The notes beneath the pieces were generated by a model. That model was not told the DNA's origin. It was given only the letters and a program-made list of their open reading frames with translations, and did no database searches. Below, piece after piece: positions 2,444 to 14,120 of a DNA stretch of 14,120 nucleotides (its first letter is position 1; every line of letters starts with the position of its first letter). A program made the position numbers and the translations under genes. The stretch comes from Anthoceros angustus (taxonomy: Eukaryota > Plantae > Anthocerotophyta), in assembly GCA_010909165.1 (NCBI GenBank), contig VJWM01000413.1:1-14120 (forward strand), in the 5' to 3' direction.

Positions 2444-2679
2444 ATGGATGGAATTTTCCTGTCATGGGACTTGTACTTAACAACTTACAGCATGGTGTGC
2501 TTAAACTACACCAAGGGCATCCATTCTCTTTAGGCACCCCATCTAAATACCAATTTAGGCGGAGGACGTTCTTATGAAAGTGTGTCCATTTGGCCTAAGC
2601 CATTTGGATACACATTTATAACAACCCAACCAAGGACACAGTGCGAAGGACCTGAAGTGTCCCCCTTTCGCTTTTCAGG

Positions 2680-2830
2680 TGTTGTGGGTAGCCGAGCACT
2701 GACCAAGGATGTGCTGGCGGGTTTCTTCGGAAGACATACATTCCCGACAAAATGGGTTTCCAGCGAAGTTGAATCGCCTGAAATAAGCCCCAATAGCCAT
2801 ATGCCCAGTCCGTAAACTGGGTGAGAAAAG
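2680..2830 (-). pseudogene. LINE ORF2 C-terminal zinc knuckle
   Basis: LRTGHMAIGAYFRRFNFAGNPFCRECMSSEETRQHILGQC fits the QLRTGH...C..C...ET..H.L..C pattern. Confidence 0.85.
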
Positions 2831-2999
2831 ATGAGACCTTACGATCATGAAGGCCAAGACGGTGTAACACCGAGAGAACCAAGCACCACTCGCTTTGAAG
2901 CTTTAATAGATGAGGCCCTTGTACATGCCACTCCCAAACTTGCCACATGAATCGATTGACGCCGGACACAAATAAGGTACAATCAATGGAAATTGGAAG

Positions 3000-3390
3000 A
3001 AGAGTGGGCGCCTTAGCGATAACATCGCCACTCAAAACTACATTATTATGGCCCGAATCAAGTGGAGGTTTAGGGAAACTTGAGGGTGAGCAAGAGAGGC
3101 ATATTGAGATTATGAGCCCGTGTGAGATAGCACAGGAGGCAGATGTGTCGATTAAAGACAATAAAGGCTGCTTGGTTATCAATGAATATGTTAAAAGCGA
3201 ACCCCAGAGGGCTAAAAGAGTAGGTAGGTACGAGATGGCCTTAACCACAGAAAGGAGTTCTGCCTCAAAACCATAGTAAGTCTCTAAACCAAAAGACAAT
3301 TGATGCACATGATCCTTGTTGAAATAGAAAACCGCGCCTCACTTTACCATCCATGAGGGAACCATCGTGTAAATTGCAGAGTATTAGGAG
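3000..3390 (-). pseudogene. LINE RNase H domain (disrupted)
   Basis: IY(T)DGSLMDGKV; FEAELLSVVKAI; NIFIDNQAA; SGHNNVVLSGDVIAKA, matching the four RNase HI motifs (YTDGS, AEL, DxQAA, H...AD..AK). Confidence 0.85.
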
Positions 3391-4009
3391 CCAGCGATCA
3401 CGAGAATGTGAGGCAATGGCTAACTCGGAGATGGTAAAATCACGGTGGTTGAGGTAAGGGAGGGGAACAAGGCGAGGAAAATGGTCTCAATGGCGGTAGG
3501 GGTGGGAACACCAAGAGGAGCTTGGGAAGGAGGGTGAGTCGGCTACTTAGCTTTGTAATACCGTTTTTTGTAGTTAGAGGCCGGTAGGAAGGCTTGGTGG
3601 ATTGGGTGGGAAGGAGGGCAAGAGAGGTTACGGAGAAGAGCGAGAGAATGGCATTGAAGACGGATCTCGGTGGCGGAAGAAGCTTCAAATTCAAGGGCCT
3701 TAGTGGAGGTGGTTGAACGCGCCATTGCCTTACAAGCTAGACGTTGAACCCGTCAAGATGTTGAATATGCGTGAGCCTCCATTAAACCAAACACCAGACC
3801 ATAATCGAGTTTAGGCAAAACAATAGTAACATATAGTTGTCGCGGAGGTTAGCTTTGAGTCCCCAAACAAGGTACCAAGAGATAATAGGCGATAGAGTCA
3901 TAGCCGGCTGTTGCACATGGGTGTTCCAAGTTAACTTGGAGTCTAAGTAAAAGCCCAAGAATTTGACACACTCGAGGGAGTAATAAGGGAGCCATCAGGC
4001 AAAGAAAGA

Positions 4010-4860
4010 GTATACTCCTTAATATTTTCCTTGCGCTTGAGAGAAAATGAATGAGCTCGAACTTGTTGAGATCAAACTCCACGAGGTGCGTGGAGGCCCA
4101 CTCTAAAGCTACATGTAGCATAGCTTGAAGCTTTTTGTGGATTTCTTGCACGAAGGAGCAGTGGCATATGCCCCAGTATCATCAATCCAACCAATGTTGC
4201 CGCCCATAGATTGAAGTTGAGAGATGAGGCCAGAGGTGAAGAATAAAAAAAAGAAATAGGCGAACCTTGTGGTAACCCCGCACAGACCAGCGCAAGAGTA
4301 TCACAAGGGCCATCCAAACATAGTGAAATTGCTCGTTGAGATAAAAAGTGAAAGACCCAATGAATCAGTGCAGTTGGAAGACCTTTCCTGCATAAAATAG
4401 ATAGGAGGATCTGATGATTAACTGAGTCAAATGCACCCTTGATGTCCATAAGGAGAAGGGAAAGAACGTGGCGTTGTCCCCAAACCCTGCGAATATCTTG
4501 TACCAGAAGAGTTGTTGCATCACTTGTACTCCGTCCTGGCCGACACCCCAAATGACCGTGGGGAAGAAGGCCAACATGAGTTTCAACTAAGAAAGAAAGT
4601 CGTGAGGCCATAAAACTCTCCGAAGCCTTGCCCAAGCAGTTAAGAAGTGCAATAGGGTGATAATTAAGAACGTGGCAGTGAATAGTTAGCTTAGTTTAAC
4701 TTGCGGAGAATGATGATAAGCGAGTGACACCACGCTATGTGATGATAACCCAATATAGAGCATGCATGAAAGATAGATAAATAAAAGCCTTTGAGGAGAT
4801 CCCATCCTCTGGAGAAACCCAGCAGCAATAGTGTGTGGGCCCGCCACCTTCCACGCCTTA
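4010..4860 (-). pseudogene. LINE reverse transcriptase domain (disrupted)
   Basis: YHPIALLNCLGK; GCRPGRST; LLLMDIKGAFDSVNHQILL; GLPQGSPIS; after a frameshift NIGWIDD (catalytic Y/FxDD position, ~4170-4190); EFDLNKFELIHF. Confidence 0.92.
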
Positions 4861-6372
4861 GCACCAAACATAGCCTTATGCAGGTGCGAGTAGGGATCGC
4901 CACTGAATTGAGAGTTTGTCAAGGTGGTAGGGAGGTACCGGATGAAGAGGGAAACAAAGGGATCGGAGGATCGACATTTGTCAAGATGAGTGAACAAGTG
5001 ACCCATCCCCAGAAAGTAAAGGGGGGGTGAAAGAAGGGGAAGCGGGTTTAGTAGAACGATAAATTCTCCAAATATCTGAGTCGCTAGCCTCTGCAAGAAA
5101 TGTCTTCCAATGGTCCTTCTTGGCCATTTTAACCATGCAAAAGTACTCATTCCTGGCTGTCCGAAAAATCGCAATGTCCGATGAACTGTTAGTGGTGCGC
5201 ATAATCCAGCGTGCCCGAGCTAGTCCCTTATGCAAAGAGGACAGGGTAGGAGACCACCAAGGTTTAGCACGGAGGTGAGGGTGCACAACTGGGGTAGAGA
5301 CGGAAATTGCCCTTTGGAGAGAGAGGGTGACCGCAACTAAGTGATCAACTGAGGCGGTATGGCGCGACTTTCGGCCGACGGCCACCGGCATGCCCCGTGT
5401 CGTTGTAGTAAGGGGTCCGTTCCCAAGAGAATGATAGGTTCCGTTTTGCACGTCTCAAACCGATTCTCGCCCCGCCGTGGCTGCTTTCTAACCAAAGTCG
5501 CGCGCCCTCACGGTTTTACTATTAACTACTTTAAACATCCGCCGAATGCGTGGCTAAACGTTTAAGGACCTGCTCACTTCTCAGATCCTACCTACCCCGT
5601 CTCTACGCTTCGCCTAGTCCGCCTTCCTTACCCTCTCACTACGCCATCATCCGCTGGGGAAGAGTGGGTATGCGGGTCCACCTCCGTCTGCTCCACCAGT
5701 GCCTCCGTCCTGCTCTACACGCCTCCGGAGTTCCACTGGTCTCATGTGTTCCGGTCCGTCCGACGCCAGGCACCTGCTCCGGAAGAGCAAGGATCTCGGT
5801 CGTCACCGCACACACCACACGTTAGGGGTCCGTCACCAGGACCTTGATCAATCTCTCCGAGGTTATCGTGCCCGCTTAGTGACTCGTGACTCGTTAGCAG
5901 GACACACAAGGGTCTACAAGAGAATGCGGTATCCACTTGTAAACGATCCGTATTGGAAACTCCTGCTGGATTGTGTCTTTGAGTGATTTTTTGTTTTTTG
6001 CTAAGTTTGGTGTCAAGAAGAGCTGGTTGTCGTGAGGAAGGGATATTTATAGCAGAAGTGTCCTTGACCTATGAGTTTTGGGTTGTTTCGTTAAATAATC
6101 ACCCTTACACTATGAACTCGATGCTCCTTGGCCTTTGGTCTCGAATATTTAATAAAAGGCCTATATGGGTTCAAGCACGAGGTTAGGTAGACCACATTAT
6201 GTGGGGATGGATTTAAAGTGGAAATATGTCCATATGTGGACATATTTACCTTGCAAAAACTCTTCTCGCTAGAATCATGGATGGACAAGTGAGCTTTGGA
6301 TACAAAAGTGAGCACAAGACACACAACCCAAGCTCATTTGAATTTCAACGAAACCGTCAAGTGAACACGAAC

Positions 6373-6550
6373 ACTAAAAGTGAGTCTTTGTCATAAGAAG
6401 TTGGAACTTGTTCAAATTTCAAAGTTTGGAATAAGCGGAATTTCAAAGTTGTACGCTTTTCAAGAGCAAGGAACTAAAAGTGAAGCATGGTCACAAACAA
6501 GTGTAAACTTGTTTGTATTTCAAAGTTTTGTCTAAGCGGATTTTCAAAAG
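6373..6550. repeat. Diverged direct duplication, 100-bp period, two copies
   Basis: actaaaagtga...gtca...aacttgtt...atttcaaagttt...taagcgga.tttcaaa starts at 6373 and again at 6473. Confidence 0.85.
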
Positions 6551-7584
6551 ATGGTAAGTACCCATGTTGTGCGGCACATCTATGAGAGCATAACGCCATC
6601 TTCACGCTGCGAGACCTTTCACACCACTGCTTTGCGCTTGAGGCGCTCGGTGCCCGTGTGAACCATGTGCCCGATCTTGTGAGGCTGCGAGAGGGAGGAG
6701 GCGGGGAGCCCGTCGGGCGAGCAAGGGAATTGAATGGCTCCAGGCGCCTCCCTCTCCGGGTGCACTTAGGAGCAAAACACGCTGGGCGCGGTGGAGGAAA
6801 AGCAAATTCGAGTTGCATCTTTGCGTGTGGAAGATGGAGCATCTTTGTGCGTGGCGGATGTTAGGCAAGAGGCGAGTCCTTGGCATGGAGGAGGATTGTC
6901 ACGGTGATAATCATACGGCGGAGGTGGGTGTGAGGCGGCTTCTCCGGATCGAAGAACCCTCAATGAGTGAGGAGGGAACTAGTCTGAGGGCAAAAAGCAC
7001 AGTCCTCTTTCATCCACAGGCGGTCAAGGCGATTCACGCAAAGGCGGGATCTCACCCGTCGATGGGGCTGTGATGCACAATGTGGGCGTGCTCGAGAACT
7101 TGGCTACGTTTTCGGATGTAGAACTGCCCACTTCAATTCGATAGCTAAGGTGTTAGATGCTTTTCCGGGCTTTGGCCTCAAGGAATTCTTCCCTTGCGTA
7201 GGGGTGAAGGCTCGAGCCACATCCTCGCTTTCCACATCAGGCGGCCATGAAAAATGCGGAGTGTACAAGCGTCATCACTTGAAGGCAAGACAAACCTTTA
7301 TGAATATTGTGCTAACTAACGACGTGAGGCAAGCTGGAGCAGCCGGGCCGAGTCCTTGGGGTGACAGTTGTGTACGCCATCTTCAAACCCGCGGCGATTT
7401 GCAAAGTGCACGAGGAGGGCTGTGGTGTGGGGGACGGGCTCGTTCGATTGTTTGCCCCAAGGGGTTAAAATTTTGCAATTTTGGGAGTCGGCGTCAAGGC
7501 CTTCCTCCAACTCCAAGGATGCGAGGCGCGGCGGGTGGCTCCTCTTGTCTTCCGCACATCATCCATTTCCTAGATACCTCTCGG

Positions 7585-8243
7585 GTGATTCGATTCACGC
7601 ATTTCTCTTTCGCTTCCGGTCGCACCGCGGTGGTGGCGCGTCTCCTTGCCGTGCGCTAGTCTATGCTTGCAATTGAACACGCCACTAACCCTTTAACTTG
7701 TTTCAGCAAGCCGTCGGGATCATCACTATATGTGATAGCACAGCGTGCCACTACATCACTCCATGTTCGAGTTTCCTCTGTGTGCTGCTCGCTTGACACC
7801 TTCCTTTGTCTCTTTGCTTGCGCCATCTCTGGTCATTTGCCACAGTGTGCTCATTGCTCGCTCCTTGTCATTTGCTCAGCTCCTTGTCATTTGCTCAGCT
7901 CTTGTCATTTGCTCGCTCCAGTCATTTTGCAGCTCTTTGCTCATTTGCTCGCTCCTTCTCATTTACTCACGGCTCTGGTCGGGTTCCCAGCTCCTGCTCA
8001 TTTGCCAGCTCCCGCTCCTTTGCCAGCTCGATCATTTGCTCTGCGTGCAATGTTCATTTGTTGTAGCTCAGGTTCACTCAAGGATATACAAGGCTCACCT
8101 GCTTTGTGAGTGGGGCACTTCATGTGGCTCTGTGTCCTTTTGTGTAGACCGCTCCACTCTATCTACTTTGTTTGGTCACATCTTGGTGTCCCAGCTTTTA
8201 GAGGGAGATGTTATGAGCATGCATTGTCGTGAGTGATGTGCAG
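7585..8243 (+). other. Predicted phase-0 GT-AG intron in the transposase gene
   Basis: CGG|GTGATT at 7585 and gatgtgcAG|ACG at 8243. Removal joins HFLDTSR to TEFFLRF in frame, restoring the H.L..SQ.EF...F...P.I.I pattern. Confidence 0.7.
7846..8045. repeat. 19-bp minisatellite (ctccttgtcatttgctcag), about 10 degenerate copies, inside the transposase intron
   Basis: Identical units at 7861-7879 and 7880-7898, with decaying copies on both sides. Confidence 0.92.
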
Positions 8244-10329
8244 ACGGAGTTTTTTTTGCGCTTTCAAAAGGAGAATCCGGATATCAAGATTGGCCATGAG
8301 CATTGAAAAGCCCTTCTTCATCAAATCCGCAAGAGAGAAATGTTTGTTGCGGTACCATGTCGAGATGGCATTTTGAAGACGCTCGAATGCTTTCGCGATT
8401 GCCACATCAAAGGTGCACCTCGTGTGCACGTGTACTGTGGGGTGTGTGGAGAGGAACCCGAGGAGGGGACAAGTGCCAGCGCGCCGGAGATGTTTTCATC
8501 CGTCCAGAGATGGTGCACTCTGTTTATGCCCTAGAGCACCGGATGAGGGGCGCATAGGCGAAAATGTTTGCTTGGTAAATGCACTGTGGAGTTTCAAGTG
8601 GCCCTCTGTCCTAAGGAGGTTTCACAAGCATTTTCCGGAGATGAAGTAGTGGCGGTGCTTGAATATCGGAAGGTGGGAGTGAATGAGGACGGAACCTCCA
8701 AGTCGAATAAAGCTAGTTTACGAAACCCATCCGTCGGCGATGATTGAATTTCTTAAGGATAAATTGGCATTTCATTCACTACGTCCAAAGATGGCAAGCC
8801 ACAGGTTTGGAAGTGCATTGATTGGTTTCAGGATGTGATAGTTTACTTATGGACTTTTGAACTATGCTTTTCAAGTTCGAATGAGATACAATCAATGCGG
8901 CATAGTGATCAAGTTACTATTCTAGTTCATGTTACATATATGCGGATGGGGGGTGGTGGAGGAGGACCCCTGTAATGTTCGAAGTTTTACCACTTTTAGT
9001 GATGACATGCACATGACTCTCTTTGTCCGGCATGCCCTTATGCTACATTGGGATACTCTTGTCAAATGGATACAAGAGTCCACGAGCATTGGATGTGGTC
9101 GGATGGTGCTTGCAATTTAAGGCTTGCAGACCAAGCTATTTTGTGGCGGTACCCAAGTCTAGCAGGAGGATGCGAGAATCTTTGTGGAGCTATTTTGGGT
9201 CGAGCCACGGAAAGGGGAGCACGGCAGGCGGTGCCATATTAAAGAGGGCACTACGTCGAAGATCACCTTCATCGACAGGCTGCGTGCAGTGGGCGTTGTC
9301 GACTTCTGCGGTCCAAGTATATCCAATGTGCATCCTCCTATGCAAGTGGAGAAAGGCGGTGCAAAGGGTTTTTGGTTGGTGGGAAAGAATGAAGTCAACC
9401 GTGCAGCGGTGGGGTGTGCACCAATCCGGGTTCTAAAGGCATGCACACATATATGGTGACTCGGTGGATGCAACCAACCCTCGGCTCAAGATCACGGCAT
9501 CTTGCGTGTTTTGTCTTTGTGCATGGGCGGTGACCATGGAGCATGTGAGGAGTGCCCTACGGGCATATGGCATTCGATTACTCGAGGCGGACGGTAGGGA
9601 GGTTGGTGGTCGAGACCGTGACCTGCACCATTAATGCTACATGCGGTTGGACGGATGGGCCGATCCTGCTAATGGTGTTGCTAGTGAAGATGTCTTTGCG
9701 GACCTCTTGGAGCTTAGACAACTTTGTGTGCGTGATCCGGATCCGAGGTTCAACTTTTTTTGGCAAAGTGCACTTGCTGCATGTGACCACGGAGCACATT
9801 ACTGTCCTAGGACAAAATTTCCTCCGAGGATAAGGTGGTTGTGGGCGATCTACTCGGGTTGAGCCGGATGGTTGTGTGTACACTTTGGATCATGAGGTCG
9901 GAGGTCACCCTTCTTTCATCCTCGTGGAGACCGTTCCCACTTTTGGACGCGTGGAAGGAGGCCGATTAGTGTATGTGCTTGACTCGGACACGGTCGAGTC
10001 CTTTAAGGAGCTTGTGAGGGAGACGAACCCATTTGTGTTTTCGTAGTCTCGACTCTAAGGCCTCAATTGTACATATGACGAAATTGAAATGACCTTGACG
10101 AACTTGTAAATACCATGGTTTGGTTGCTCAAGATGTGGCCATATTCACCTGTGATGACCCGCTCCACTCGCTTGGGATCTGGAGCACTTTGCTTGACTTG
10201 CGACCTTGCGGGTGACAATGCCCAACTTAAGCGCCTTTTAAAACCCCATCTCGTGGAAGACCTTGGAAGAGCCAAGATTGATGCAAGTGAGCCATGGCCC
10301 ACGGCGTGTCAGTGTCATTTGTCGGGCGC

Positions 10330-10420
10330 CTGCGATGGTAGCGCGGTGTTCTGCGATGGCGGTAGCGGTGTCGATGCGATGGCGAGCACGGTGTTGCGAT
10401 GGCGGATGCGGATGGTGGCG
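10330..10420. repeat. Short degenerate GC-rich repeat (gcgatgg(c/t) core)
   Basis: gcgatgg recurs four times between ~10332 and 10402 in the spacer between the convergent genes. Confidence 0.6.
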
Positions 10421-11399
10421 GAGACCATTCATGGGCGCAGCCCTCTTGGGCAAGTGTCCGGAAGACTTGCGTAGTCATTTGGTGGTGATCGGCAACCCCG
10501 GATCCGGCATGGCGATGCGGAAAATCGCCACGGCGGAGGCGTCGGTGATCACGTCGTCGGTGGCCCACCGACGATGATGAGGATACACAATCGGTGAAGT
10601 CAAGCTAGTCTCTAAGAAGGGACCAAGAAAAGGGCCATCTAGTGTTTGGGAGAAGTTCGTTATTTCACATGTTTGTTCTTGCGTGTTTAGGCGTGGTGTG
10701 TGTTGGAAGGAAGGCTCTCCCTGTACATGCAGGCGCTATTGTTTCTCAATTGAAGCACTTCAAAATTGTCCGACATTCTATCAAGTATGTCAAGCGGTGT
10801 CTTTCTAGTCTCTCCATTGTCCGGTTGTCTAGCCACCTCTGATTCAGCGTTTGACATGTGCCTCTAGGGCTTCCTCTAGCGTGGCCAGCAACGTAGGGCT
10901 TACCCAATACTTGGGCTTGTCCTTCTTGTGGGGATCCGGCTGTCTGCTCCGGCATCTCGACTTTGGCTGCGGCCACACGCGATGCCTTGACGGAGACGGT
11001 TGCCCAAGCTTCCCTTGTTCGTGGTATAGCCGGGCCCTACTTCCACATAATAATTACCTTCAACAACCTCGGCGCCTTTGCGAATTGGGCCCTTCCAAAA
11101 CTTGTCTTCATGCGTGCTTGAGCCTGCGAACACCCTCGACACACCAGGAGGTAGAATTTAACGTTCTCGCATTGCACCTCCGCACCCATATAGTTGTCTC
11201 GGGCTCCAACTCTCGCACTCCGAGACAAGTGACTAGTCTTGGTCTTGATGAATGCTTGGTTTGGTCGTCTTTGGAGCCTTCCGCTTGCCTCTACTCCCAG
11301 GCGGGTCCCCATCCTCGGCGGCCTCACTATTACCATCTTGCACCAAACACGCCCACCCCACTCATTTCGCCTCGAACGTTCGGTGACACCTCCACCCAG

Positions 11400-11830
11400 C
11401 ACCTCCACGACATGTGTCCTTGTCCACTTCAGTCCATCATCCTTCGCCTCATGAGATGTGTCCTCATTCTCCACCTCGGTGTGTCCCTATCCACCTCAAG
11501 TGGGGCCTTCTCAACCTCAAGTGTGTCATTCTCCACCTCATGTGTGGCATTTGCAGTCGGTGTGGCCTTCTCTACGATGCCCCTCCATGTCCACCTCAAG
11601 CGTGTCCTTGTCCACCTCTAGTGTGGCCTTCTCAACTGAGCTATGTCATTCTCCACCTCATGTGTGGCACTTTTACGCCGTGTGGCCTTCACCTCGTAGC
11701 TCCCATCCACCTCAAGTGTGTCCTTGTCCACCTCAAATGTGGCATTCTCCACTATAAGTGTGGCCTTTTCCGCTCGGGTGTGGCCTTCTTCACCTCAGCT
11801 CATTCTCCACCTCCTCATTGGTCGCTTCCT
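11400..11830 (-). repeat. Coding ~21-bp tandem repeat (T-L/H-E-V-E/D-K/N-A/D) with a 120-bp higher-order duplication
   Basis: Minus strand reads THEVENDTLEVEKAPLEVD / TLEVDKDTLEVD. The 26-mer tgtcattctccacctcatgtgtggca is identical at 11524-11549 and 11644-11669. Confidence 0.9.
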
Positions 11831-12159
11831 CGGTGTGGGCGTTGTTGCAAAGTTGTCCAAAACCGCATCATGTAAAAAGTCATCAAGTGCTTGGGATTGG
11901 ATGTAGTCCACTAAGCCAACCACGTCATCACCTCCATGAACCTCTGATCGCCTCCCCCACCGCACCTCGTTCCACGGACCCTTTGGGTCTTCACAGCAGT
12001 CGGCTCCTGCGTGGGTGTCATCAGCTTTGCGGCAATTCCATTGTTACCTTCTACAAAGGGCCTACGAGATTGACCCCTTGCATTGGGCGTTTTTCCTGGG
12101 CGGGTCCAAGCACCCCCTCGTGCTAACACGGCACGCAACACGATAAAGTTGCAAAGTTG

Positions 12160-12490
12160 CAAACTCTATAGAAGGGTGAACCTCTTGTCCAATTGCGCCG
12201 GCCGAATATCCCTATTTCGGGAGGACATTACAAACTGACCATAGGGGGCGTGCACATCTTTGTCGTGTTCCAGTATCCGGCCGCAAGCGGCGGTAGCGAA
12301 GGATTTGAGGGTGTGGCCAAAGCCTTCCTATTTCGGATTTTGTACACGGCTATGGGCGATTGAAGCACTATGGCTCGCTGGTTGTCAGCGTAAAGCATAC
12401 GACCGCGATGGGAGAGCGATTCTCGTTAAATGTGCTCCGAAAATAACAAACTCTCCGGCGGCGAAAGCGGGCTCGCCAAACGAATCAACC
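12160..12490 (-). pseudogene. Putative SET-like domain (needs assumed frameshifts)
   Basis: FAAGEFV (~12445-12465); AAGYWN+HDKD (12255-12285, one missing C in aac[c]ac); QFV; EIGIF (12204-12218); IGQEV..TL.Y (12166-12195). Order and spacing resemble SET motifs GE.I..Y.G / NHS..PN / IFA.R.I..GEE.T..Y. Confidence 0.45.
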
Positions 12491-12789
12491 TGGCAACAGT
12501 TATAAAGTATTCCTGGTATCGTGCGTCGAGCGTATCGATTTCGTCGAAGAAAATCTCGTGGCGTCGTTTACACGTCGCCACTCGATCTCCCCAAAGCGGA
12601 TCCAAAGTCGCTGCCCTCTTCCAAGCATCATAAATCGCTCATTCTCTTCCTTCGTAGTAAAGACACAATCGGGCTTTCATGCGGTATGTGTCACTAATGC
12701 ACCACTTCTTGGCCAAAAGCGAGAGGGTCCTCGTCCATGCGGATCAAATGTTAGCTCTTCCTCGCATTTGGTAACACTTCAAACCCATG

Positions 12790-13400
12790 GATGCGGGGGA
12801 ATATAACCGCATCTCATATCGCTTTCGATGTAGCGATTTCGACCACTCAATAATAAGCCGGGATAGTTGTGCCTCTCGGAACATGCATCAACCACCCACT
12901 CTCCTTCTTTGGAAAATGCCTCCACAAGCGTCGCGCATAAGGCCCGGTGGCGTTGGTGAGAACACACCACGTTTGTCGTGAGATAAGTATACCTACTTCT
13001 TCACAACCATGTCGTGACTAATGACGGATCTCCCATTATTGAATCTCCCTCGCTGACTTCCTGAGAGCATGTTGGCCTTGTCTCTTGAACATTCTTCCTT
13101 CACACACCAGCCCACAGTGACATACTCCAATGTTTCACAGCCCACCCCCTCGGCGTGCATGTTCGTCTTGTCCCAGACGAAGGACACCATCCCACCTTTT
13201 CGGCACCACTTCCTCATACATTCTCTGACAGTGTGGGAGTCCTCCACTCCATGCATCACAATAAAGCGGAATTCCTCTAACGTTGTCTTCTCCGCAAAAC
13301 TCTCGAACACTGATGACATCATATTCCCGTTATTTCTTGTATCCATCGGGCCTATATTGAAACACCTCGGCACATCCATCACGAAAAGCGAGTACTAGCG
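12790..13400 (-). pseudogene. Amino (N6-adenine/N4-cytosine) DNA methyltransferase domain, beta motif order (N6_N4_Mtase-like)
   Basis: YSLFVMDVP (motif IV, DPPY position, 13368-13376) precedes FVWDK and EYVTVGW, then HQ.HRALCATLVEAFSKEGEWVVDACS + (shifted frame) GTT + LLSGRNRYIESD (~12820-12960). This matches HxxQKP..L...LI...S.EGD.VLD.F.GSGTT..AA...GR..IG.E.D. Confidence 0.8.
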
Positions 13401-13667
13401 TGCGCGTAAATAGCCACGCATATCCAGCACACTGCGGGTCTCAATCTGGTACTGAACTTGATAGTCGACTGATGGGACATTGAAAACAAATAGCCCTTCT
13501 TCCATATCTTTGTCCGCTAAGGCCCTCTGCTCAATTTCCAGCCCTTTCCAGTTGTTGACCTCGAAAATGAAGTGCTGGAAATCTTCTGGAAGCCGGGACA
13601 GGTTCTCGATGTCCTTTAATTGCTGCACAATATAACATCAAACGTAAGAACAGAGAAGGTCTTGCTC

Positions 13668-13968
13668 ACAACATGTGGAGGGCGCCGGCCGGCCGGCGCC
13701 CTCCATGCACACAACTTTGGGCGCCGGCCGGCGCCCTCCCTCTGAGGCATGTAGGCGCGGGCAGATAGCACCCTTCATGCAGAGCATGTGGAGGCGCCCG
13801 GTCGGCGCCCTCCATGCACCATGTGCGGAAGCCGGCCGGCGCCCTCCATGCACACACCATGTGCGAAGCCGGCCGGCCCTCCATCACCATGTGCGAGGCC
13901 GGCCGGCGCCTCCTCATCACACCATGTGCGAAGCCGGCCGGCGCCCATGCACACACCATGTGCGGGGG
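13668..13968. repeat. GC-rich minisatellite (30-37-bp units, core GCCGGCCGGCGCCCTCCATGCACACCATGTGCG) with a perfect 30-bp palindrome; in a predicted intron
   Basis: GCCGGCCGGC at 13684, 13723, 13831, 13868, 13898 and 13933. 13676-13705 (TGGAGGGCGCCGGCCGGCCGGCGCCCTCCA) equals its own reverse complement. Lies between the acceptor at 13623-13624 and a candidate donor AG|GTAGGT at ~14026 on the minus strand. Confidence 0.92.
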
Positions 13969-14120
13969 CCGTGGCTTATTTAACATATGGCATGTCTCCT
14001 GATGCCAGAGAATTTGAAGTACCTACCTATAGAATCATGGAGGATGAGCGATGATCAGAAGATAGCCGTGTAGCTAGACTAGAGTCTTCATAGAGCATGA
14101 GAACGCAGGGAAGATGCTTT

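Follow-up and report, generated by a model that had tools for sequence, protein, structure and literature searches.

A decayed Sola2-like transposase gene facing a methyltransferase-fold pseudogene in Anthoceros angustus: a possible cargo-carrying transposon in a land plant

Transposons that carry a DNA-modifying enzyme of their own are a recently recognised class. They are relevant to the ways in which mobile elements escape host silencing or turn it to use, and to the entry of prokaryote-type methyltransferases into eukaryotic genomes. The element Sola1-1_Ec32 of Ectocarpus has an opposite-strand gene for a protein of 1104 amino acids with a ParB-like and an N4-cytosine/N6-adenine (N4C/N6A) methyltransferase domain; comparable proteins are present on transposons of green and red algae, and the authors propose that the Ectocarpus protein binds and modifies the element's own DNA (Genome Biol 2025, PMC12477816). 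PAG2, a fusion of PF01555 with SET, has been described on red-algal Plavaka (EnSpm), Mutator, Zisupton and Fanzor elements (10.1101/2025.02.11.637652), and dictyostelid Sola2 elements swap modules of 3' cargo (DFa-1/2/3, PPa-1/4/5; PMC3627910). Among plant proteins, those of the MpDN4MT1 type carry the motif TSPPY (10.1101/2021.02.12.428880). Here we describe a stretch of 14,120 nucleotides of Anthoceros angustus (contig VJWM01000413.1, the whole of which we call the window). The part under study, positions 7250-14120 of the window, holds the remains of a Sola2-like transposase gene on the plus strand and of a methyltransferase-like gene on the minus strand.

We read this stretch as what remains of a cut-and-paste transposon with cargo in a land plant, a copy that is dead and incomplete. 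We hold this interpretation to be slightly more probable than its contrary, with the pairing of the two genes plausible, if unproven. The plus strand would provide the gene for a Sola2-like DDD transposase and, facing it tail to tail, the minus strand an accessory gene for a protein with the fold of beta-class N6A/N4C methyltransferases; the two would travel together, as suggested by published algal elements with the same layout. An earlier reading made from the sequence alone (the sequence-only reading) had reported that the genes are convergent and that both are decayed, and the strands and lesions that we read from the sequence bear it out. It is reasonable to read this convergent layout as that of a transposon with a DNA amino-methyltransferase of its own. 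The theme itself is known, since transposons with PF01555 accessory genes have been published for red, brown and green algae, and the combination of transposon and methyltransferase, put forward by the sequence-only reading as a candidate new system, is a published concept. The literature searched contained no publication on a Sola2-methyltransferase pairing or on the subfamily described below.

The methyltransferase-like gene was examined by homology. An exhaustive HMMER search of a library of 1.84 billion representatives with the minus-strand fragment 12996-13394 returned P0002 (E 1.6e-6) and P0003 (E 5.4e-5), both of them real relatives, and additional searches added P0007, P0008, P0009, P0010 and P0011. 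Three of the relatives passed the gathering score of PF01555 (N6_N4_Mtase): P0002 with 47 bits against a cut-off of 26.7, P0007 with 30 bits and P0008 with 50 bits. Aligned pairwise, fragment 12996-13394 matched residues 44-140 of P0002 with 34% identity (E 1e-15), and fragment 12782-13000 aligned to P0002 residues 196-222, in the stretch 'YQKP..L....SK.G.WV.D.CS' just before motif I. A family hidden Markov model (HMM) was built from P0002, P0007, P0008 and P0006 and searched against the six-frame fragments of the window. Only the same two fragments matched, 12996-13394 with E 1e-17 over profile positions 76-184 and 12782-13000 with E 9e-7 over positions 231-264, on one strand and in collinear order. 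Upstream of these, fragment 13398-13637 matched residues 11-51 of P0007 (E 6e-7). The methyltransferase-like gene on the minus strand (Table 1) is confirmed by this homology. Two further candidates were dropped: a second motif-I look-alike, 'LDPLWGD' (12429-12638), where the family HMM found no match, and a match by eye of 12503-12676 to 'FRKEPMVN..GGRGS', because an HMM of the relatives' C-terminal tail matched nothing in the window.

The motifs of the gene follow the permuted order of beta-class enzymes, with motif IV preceding the motif I region on the minus strand. In most relatives the loop that binds S-adenosylmethionine (SAM) reads C-S-G-S-G-S/T (variants AGSGS, AGAGS and CGTGS), with all glycines kept; the window copy reads C-S-E-R-H-N, and the glycine loop kept in the family is thus lost here. 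An AlphaFold2 model of the relative P0008 was of moderate quality (predicted template modelling score 0.62; mean predicted local distance difference test score, pLDDT, 55; core pLDDT 70-90). Its best Foldseek matches in the PDB were CcrM (6pbd), M.MboIIA (1g60), M1.HpyAVI (5hfj) and N4CMT (8s9o), together with TTHA0409, M.RsrI (1eg2) and M.PvuII (1boo), with E between 7e-10 and 3e-6. As judged on the model of this one relative, the predicted fold of the family is that of beta-class DNA methyltransferases. The beta-class motifs announced by the sequence-only reading are therefore real, in agreement with the family HMM matches and the motif order. Its SET-like motifs found no support: the eight minus-strand fragments of 11798-12676 contained no SET at E<=1, and 12388-12567 had no PDB match. 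The relatives' C-termini were of low complexity, with no SET, and their N-terminal region had no Pfam match, ParB included; the AlphaFold2 model of that region (pLDDT 45) was unusable. A tail common to transposase and methyltransferase, also claimed, was not seen in a tblastx comparison of the window with itself, which gave no similarity between plus and minus strands.

The catalytic motif sets this family apart. In DPPY-type enzymes, motif IV supplies an aromatic residue that stacks on the flipped base. The window gene does not match the catalytic consensus (D/N/S)-P-P-(Y/F/W); its motif IV reads DVPR, and those of P0002, P0006, P0007 and P0008 read DLPRG. Methyl transfer by these D[VL]PR proteins is doubtful, because the base-stacking aromatic residue is replaced. 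The proteins DN4MT1 and N4CMT, which the sequence-only reading had named as eukaryotic examples of N4C enzymes, are not relatives in the narrow sense, with TSPPY there and DVPR here. The metagenomic P0011 (contig L006, JGI metagenome 3300009029) was the only family member with an aromatic residue in motif IV, which reads DIPYG, and it has an acidic C-terminal tail; from its sequence it may represent the older state of the D[VL]PR subfamily, perhaps an active one.

The window copy of the gene is a pseudogene without function, as follows from its stops, its frameshifts and the CSERHN loop. In addition to the stop that splits the exon (Table 1), a TAA lies near 12768 and frameshifts lie near 13000, 12800 and 12790 of the minus strand, giving two stops and at least three frameshifts in all. 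A textbook acceptor (ttcttacgtttgatgttatattgtgcag/CAA, 13623/13622) precedes the exon, whose first position is 13622. The preceding intron contains a GC-rich tandem array of ~35-bp units (13675-13965; GGCGCCGGCCGGCGCC), which includes a perfect palindrome of 30 bp at 13676-13705 and another, of 18 bp, at 13719-13736. Introns had been proposed for both genes; this one is supported, and those of the transposase gene cannot be distinguished from frameshifts.

Paralogues in another organism (sequencing runs SRR33208241/2) support this exon-intron structure. The sequence L009 equals contig L002 minus three segments, 2642-2736, 3330-3419 and 5199-5310, and is otherwise identical to it; L009 is therefore a spliced transcript. 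The third of these introns sits directly before 'RVRSVGNL', the residue-for-residue equivalent of 'QLKDIENL' in the window, so that the intron position is shared. These results indicate that the methyltransferase-like family is an intron-bearing eukaryotic gene family, transcribed in at least one organism. The conceptual product there has ~1200 residues, and most of the N-terminal part of the window gene would therefore lie beyond the window end. The reading frame of the L009 transcript (L002 2400-6740) is broken into six open reading frames (ORFs), so the copy that is expressed there is possibly a pseudogene too. On the minus strand of L002 (254-1708), ORFs in head-to-head orientation to the methyltransferase-like gene run off the contig end; one of them contains a stretch, '...FCKLWQRDFRLVKIPKSNRFSVCQDC...', resembling the CxxC N-terminus of Sola-type transposases, and it had no significant match in the window. 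On contig L001, two paralogous ORFs, 'MEPPNKRA...GDFWTVQGTGNP...', which belong to no Pfam family, lie at 3361-4050 and 4534-5091 of the plus strand, upstream of and on the same strand as the P0002 methyltransferase gene.

The transposase gene was compared with the Sola2_DFa-2 transposase of Dictyostelium, of which five short conserved blocks were used (Additional file 3 of PMC3627910). In a chain test, these were aligned locally with gaps and were required to be collinear on one strand. With all five blocks the chain score was 148, against a maximum of 134 among 150 shuffles, none of which reached 148. A 3-block chain scored 98, against 76.9 +/- 6.0 in shuffles, and was reached by 0 of 1000; eight unrelated control loci scored 68-72 in the same test. 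The block with WSDGA was the best ungapped match of its Sola2 block anywhere in the window. Taken singly and ungapped, the blocks were not significant, their scores being reached by 41 to 825 of 1000 shuffles. For the first Sola2 block (…MDFKEN…), the best match in the window lay on the minus strand at 11884-11931 ('DDVVGLVDYIQSQALD'), with a score reached by 41 of 1000 shuffles, and this match is probably due to chance. The 3-block chain supports, at the motif level, the Sola2-type transposase seen by the sequence-only reading, and the remnant appears to be Sola2-like, the reference having been Sola2 alone.

This gene is dead as well. Its frame changes several times over 8398-10046, and each of the three blocks is in a frame of its own in the stop-to-stop list. 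FSD and WSDGA are kept; in the third block ('HGKGSTAGG') an alignment by eye places Ala at the expected third catalytic Asp. The three frames and the apparent replacement of Asp together indicate that the transposase gene is also inactive.

To place both genes in the genome, positions 8200-14120 were compared with short DNA contigs of A. angustus (organism A) and of two relatives, B and C. There were 141 matching contigs of A, of which 20, 34, 48 and 39 fell into the classes of >=99%, 95-99%, 90-95% and <90% likeness. The matches concentrated on 8398-10179, on 12556-13743, on the 21-bp repeat (11170-11763) and on a high-copy repeat from ~13995-14010. The transposase core (8398-10179) was covered by contigs of A (80-99% alike) and of relative B, and the methyltransferase core (12556-13743) by contigs of A, B and C; thus relative B holds look-alikes of both cores and relative C only of the methyltransferase core. 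An RNA run gave no match to 8200-14120. As the contig matches on both cores are multi-copy and diverged, both genes belong to repeated, diverged families, as expected of transposon genes. The alternative continuations seen at contig ends (10022 and 14010) matched no other part of the window, and no insertion could therefore be delimited. The left limit of the element assumed by the sequence-only reading, 7250, is marked by nothing in the sequence, and the right end may lie beyond the window or may have been cut by the repeat at ~14000.

Several observations weigh against a single element, and they are shared out among the other explanations. The two genes may be neighbours by chance, a dead Sola2-like fragment beside a dead, independently mobile or duplicated methyltransferase-like copy in a repeat-rich, repeatedly invaded region. 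We regard this as possible, though on balance unlikely. It draws on the LINE (long interspersed nuclear element) with RVT_1 that the window also holds, and on the high-copy repeat that cuts in at ~13995-14010. No terminal inverted repeats (TIRs) or target-site duplication (TSD) were found enclosing both genes, the inverted pairs detected being at chance level, so that the common termini considered by the sequence-only reading did not materialise. No contig bridges the two genes, and most of the 2.5-kb spacer has no look-alike contigs; such a gap in coverage proves nothing by itself. Summed over contigs, depth at the transposase core is several times that at the methyltransferase core, but depth of this kind measures copy number poorly. 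In the other organism, six contigs with methyltransferase paralogues (L001-L004, L007 and L008) had no Sola2 core within reach. Chance adjacency is opposed by the published Ectocarpus element, in which a Sola-type transposase and a PF01555 gene have the same tail-to-tail layout, and by the similar density of lesions in the transposase and methyltransferase genes. The methyltransferase-like gene could instead be a pseudogene of an old, diversified, intron-bearing host family, domesticated or never mobile, with the transposon consisting of the transposase only. The paralogues of the other organism, 35-58% identical as proteins, have only coding homology in common, one of them is transcribed and spliced with three introns, and L002 also encodes the ordinary-looking genes Peptidase_C48 and RecQ. 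Yet the core is multi-copy in A. angustus with a spread of divergences, the window copy is dead and lies among transposons, and the published homologous domains are transposon cargo, all of which makes a host family improbable.

The least credible explanation, very unlikely for the methyltransferase, is that chance matches to motifs in non-coding DNA have been taken for one of the genes or for both. It draws on the lack of Pfam, PDB and ESM Atlas matches for the transposase and methyltransferase fragments of the window. Among 30 window fragments searched against Pfam there was no transposase, methyltransferase, SET or ParB, and only the LINE RVT_1 and GIL1/IRKI_C matched; ten minus-strand fragments of the methyltransferase region had no Pfam match at E<=1, and the plus-strand transposase fragments had no Pfam or ESM Atlas match. 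PDB sequence searches with three fragments gave chance matches or none, ESM Atlas look-ups of three fragments gave no lead, a word-indexed search with a 133-residue fragment found nothing, a metagenome scan returned no relative, and a viral scan returned a single generic PF01555 match. The Sola2 match moreover consists of three short blocks set against one distant reference, from Dictyostelium, none of them individually significant without gaps. Chance is contradicted by the collinear family HMM matches on one strand and by the library-wide match, by a Sola2 chain that exceeded all 1000 shuffles and all control loci, and by look-alike contigs that concentrate on exactly the two cores. Taken together, these data leave the dead copy of a cargo-carrying transposon as the reading that we prefer.

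If the two genes formed one transposon, the accessory protein of intact copies would bind SAM and also DNA of the element itself, for which the GC-rich palindromes arrayed in the intron are a possible site. It might then mark or shield the DNA of the element, which could allow escape from host silencing or its steering; with Arg in the place of the motif IV aromatic residue, the protein may bind rather than methylate. Self-marking with N4-methylcytosine or N6-methyladenine, as the sequence-only reading had supposed, is unproven for the family and impossible for the window copy, because of its D[VL]PR motif, its stops and frameshifts and its destroyed SAM loop. A wider proposal is that land plants harbour a Sola2-type family with a regular cargo, an intron-bearing protein of methyltransferase fold with a conserved D-V/L-P-R, which might either modify DNA or bases in a new way or act, dependent on SAM, as a 'reader' of the element's GC-rich palindrome array, and which could have seeded plant host genes of this fold. 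We put this forward as a tentative and rather unlikely idea.

Table 1. Positions of features in and around the two genes, numbered along the window
Feature	Position	Strand	Basis or remark
18-bp tandem repeat	7848..8029	+	5' of transposase remnants
Sola2-like transposase pseudogene	8398..10046	+	Taken as the conserved coding core found in many copies; N-terminal limit uncertain
Block 'FTTFSDDMHMTLFVRHALML'	8986..9045	+	FSD..NH block of Sola2_DFa-2; Smith-Waterman score 33, first chain link
Block 'WMWSDGACNLRLAD'	9090..9131	+	WSDGA, position of the second catalytic Asp in Sola2; score 36
Block 'WSYFGSSHGKGSTAGGAILKR'	9185..9247	+	YHGKSxxD block of Sola2; score 29
21-bp (7-residue) tandem repeat between both genes	11465..11797	-	Repeated elsewhere in the genome
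Single long exon, pseudogene, putative beta-class (PF01555-related) DNA amino-methyltransferase fold, D[VL]PR subfamily	12757..13622	-	Homology and contig matches
Motif I region 'DACSERH'	12869..12889	-	Relatives: D-x-C-S-G-S-G
Motif IV D-V-P-R	13365..13376	-	Beta-class enzymes: (D/N/S)PP(Y/F/W)
In-frame stop TAG splitting the exon	13395..13397	-	Read from sequence
Intron, 3' part, acceptor ...ttatattgtgcag/CAA	13623..13994	-	Position of the L002 5199-5310 intron

The window is land-plant nuclear DNA with a G+C content of ~50% throughout; the observed/expected ratio of CpG, 0.8-0.9 across the element, was uninformative. The 18-bp tandem repeat upstream of the transposase remnants may be subterminal. 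In minus frames, the 21-bp repeat between the genes would encode a 7-residue unit, '(A/D)T(L/H)EVE(K/N)' ('..TLEVEK..'), and a 104-nt contig identical to part of it was present in the A. angustus DNA run. The high-copy repeat that begins at ~13995-14010, of which the window has the start (~13995-14120), has a summed contig depth of ~570 in the same run and is found in a related species as well; left of 14010, 18 contigs carry a different, mutually consistent sequence. From these sequences, the repeat appears either to cut into the intron of the methyltransferase gene or to end the unit.

Farther to the left, an ORF at 826-1587 of the plus strand has a GIL1/IRKI C-terminal domain (PF24994, E 4e-11 in Pfam) and probably represents the final exon of an ordinary host gene of the plant, which was found in two sequencing runs of A. 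angustus and in runs of related species. A decayed non-LTR (non-long terminal repeat) retrotransposon of the LINE type occupies 2600-5500 of the minus strand, with RVT_1 (PF00078) at 4072-4635 (E 1e-9) and broken ORFs on both sides. The AT-rich stretch 6000-6550 contains a 26-bp palindrome that is perfect but for one mismatch at its centre (6222-6247), a near-palindrome of 24 bp (6493-6516) and a direct repeat of ~100 bp (6373-6447 / 6473-6548), and may be a small non-autonomous element.

As the copy is dead and the pairing unproven, the value of the locus is that of one more data point. It adds to the recorded elements a land-plant case with a Sola2-like partner and a subfamily with a D[VL]PR catalytic motif whose intact relatives keep the SAM loop and, as predicted, the fold, and this subfamily raises the question of whether such proteins still methylate anything.

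Compared with the bacterial and eukaryotic enzymes CcrM, M.MboIIA, M.RsrI, M.PvuII, N4CMT and MpDN4MT1, the relatives of the window gene are alike in passing PF01555, in their permuted motifs, in their predicted fold and in the GSGS SAM loop. They differ in D[VL]PR(G), which replaces (D/N/S)PP(Y/F/W) or TSPPY, in their introns and in a long N-terminal extension. The dictyostelid Sola2 elements share with the window the collinear catalytic blocks of Sola2_DFa-2, and they are large elements with a second, unrelated 3' gene; their cargo is Fanzor1 rather than a methyltransferase, and their TIRs of 12-22 bp and 4-bp AT-rich TSDs were not found here.

PAG2 resembles the proposed cargo gene of the window in that a PF01555 domain serves as transposon cargo, moves between superfamilies and is degenerate in most copies, and the inverted-repeat tandem arrays beside the Plavaka accessory genes resemble the array in the window intron. 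PAG2 differs in its SET domain, of which none is detectable here, in the transposase superfamilies that carry it and in its red-algal hosts. Sola1-1_Ec32 differs in being a Sola1 element of a brown alga with a ParB-like domain in its cargo; the locus described here is Sola2-like, has DVPR/DLPRG as motif IV and the N-terminal exons of its cargo gene outside the window, and its status as one element is unproven. Both are alike in the combination, proposed in the case of the window, of a DNA transposon of the Sola superfamily with a gene for a prokaryote-type N4C/N6A methyltransferase domain that lies opposite the transposase.

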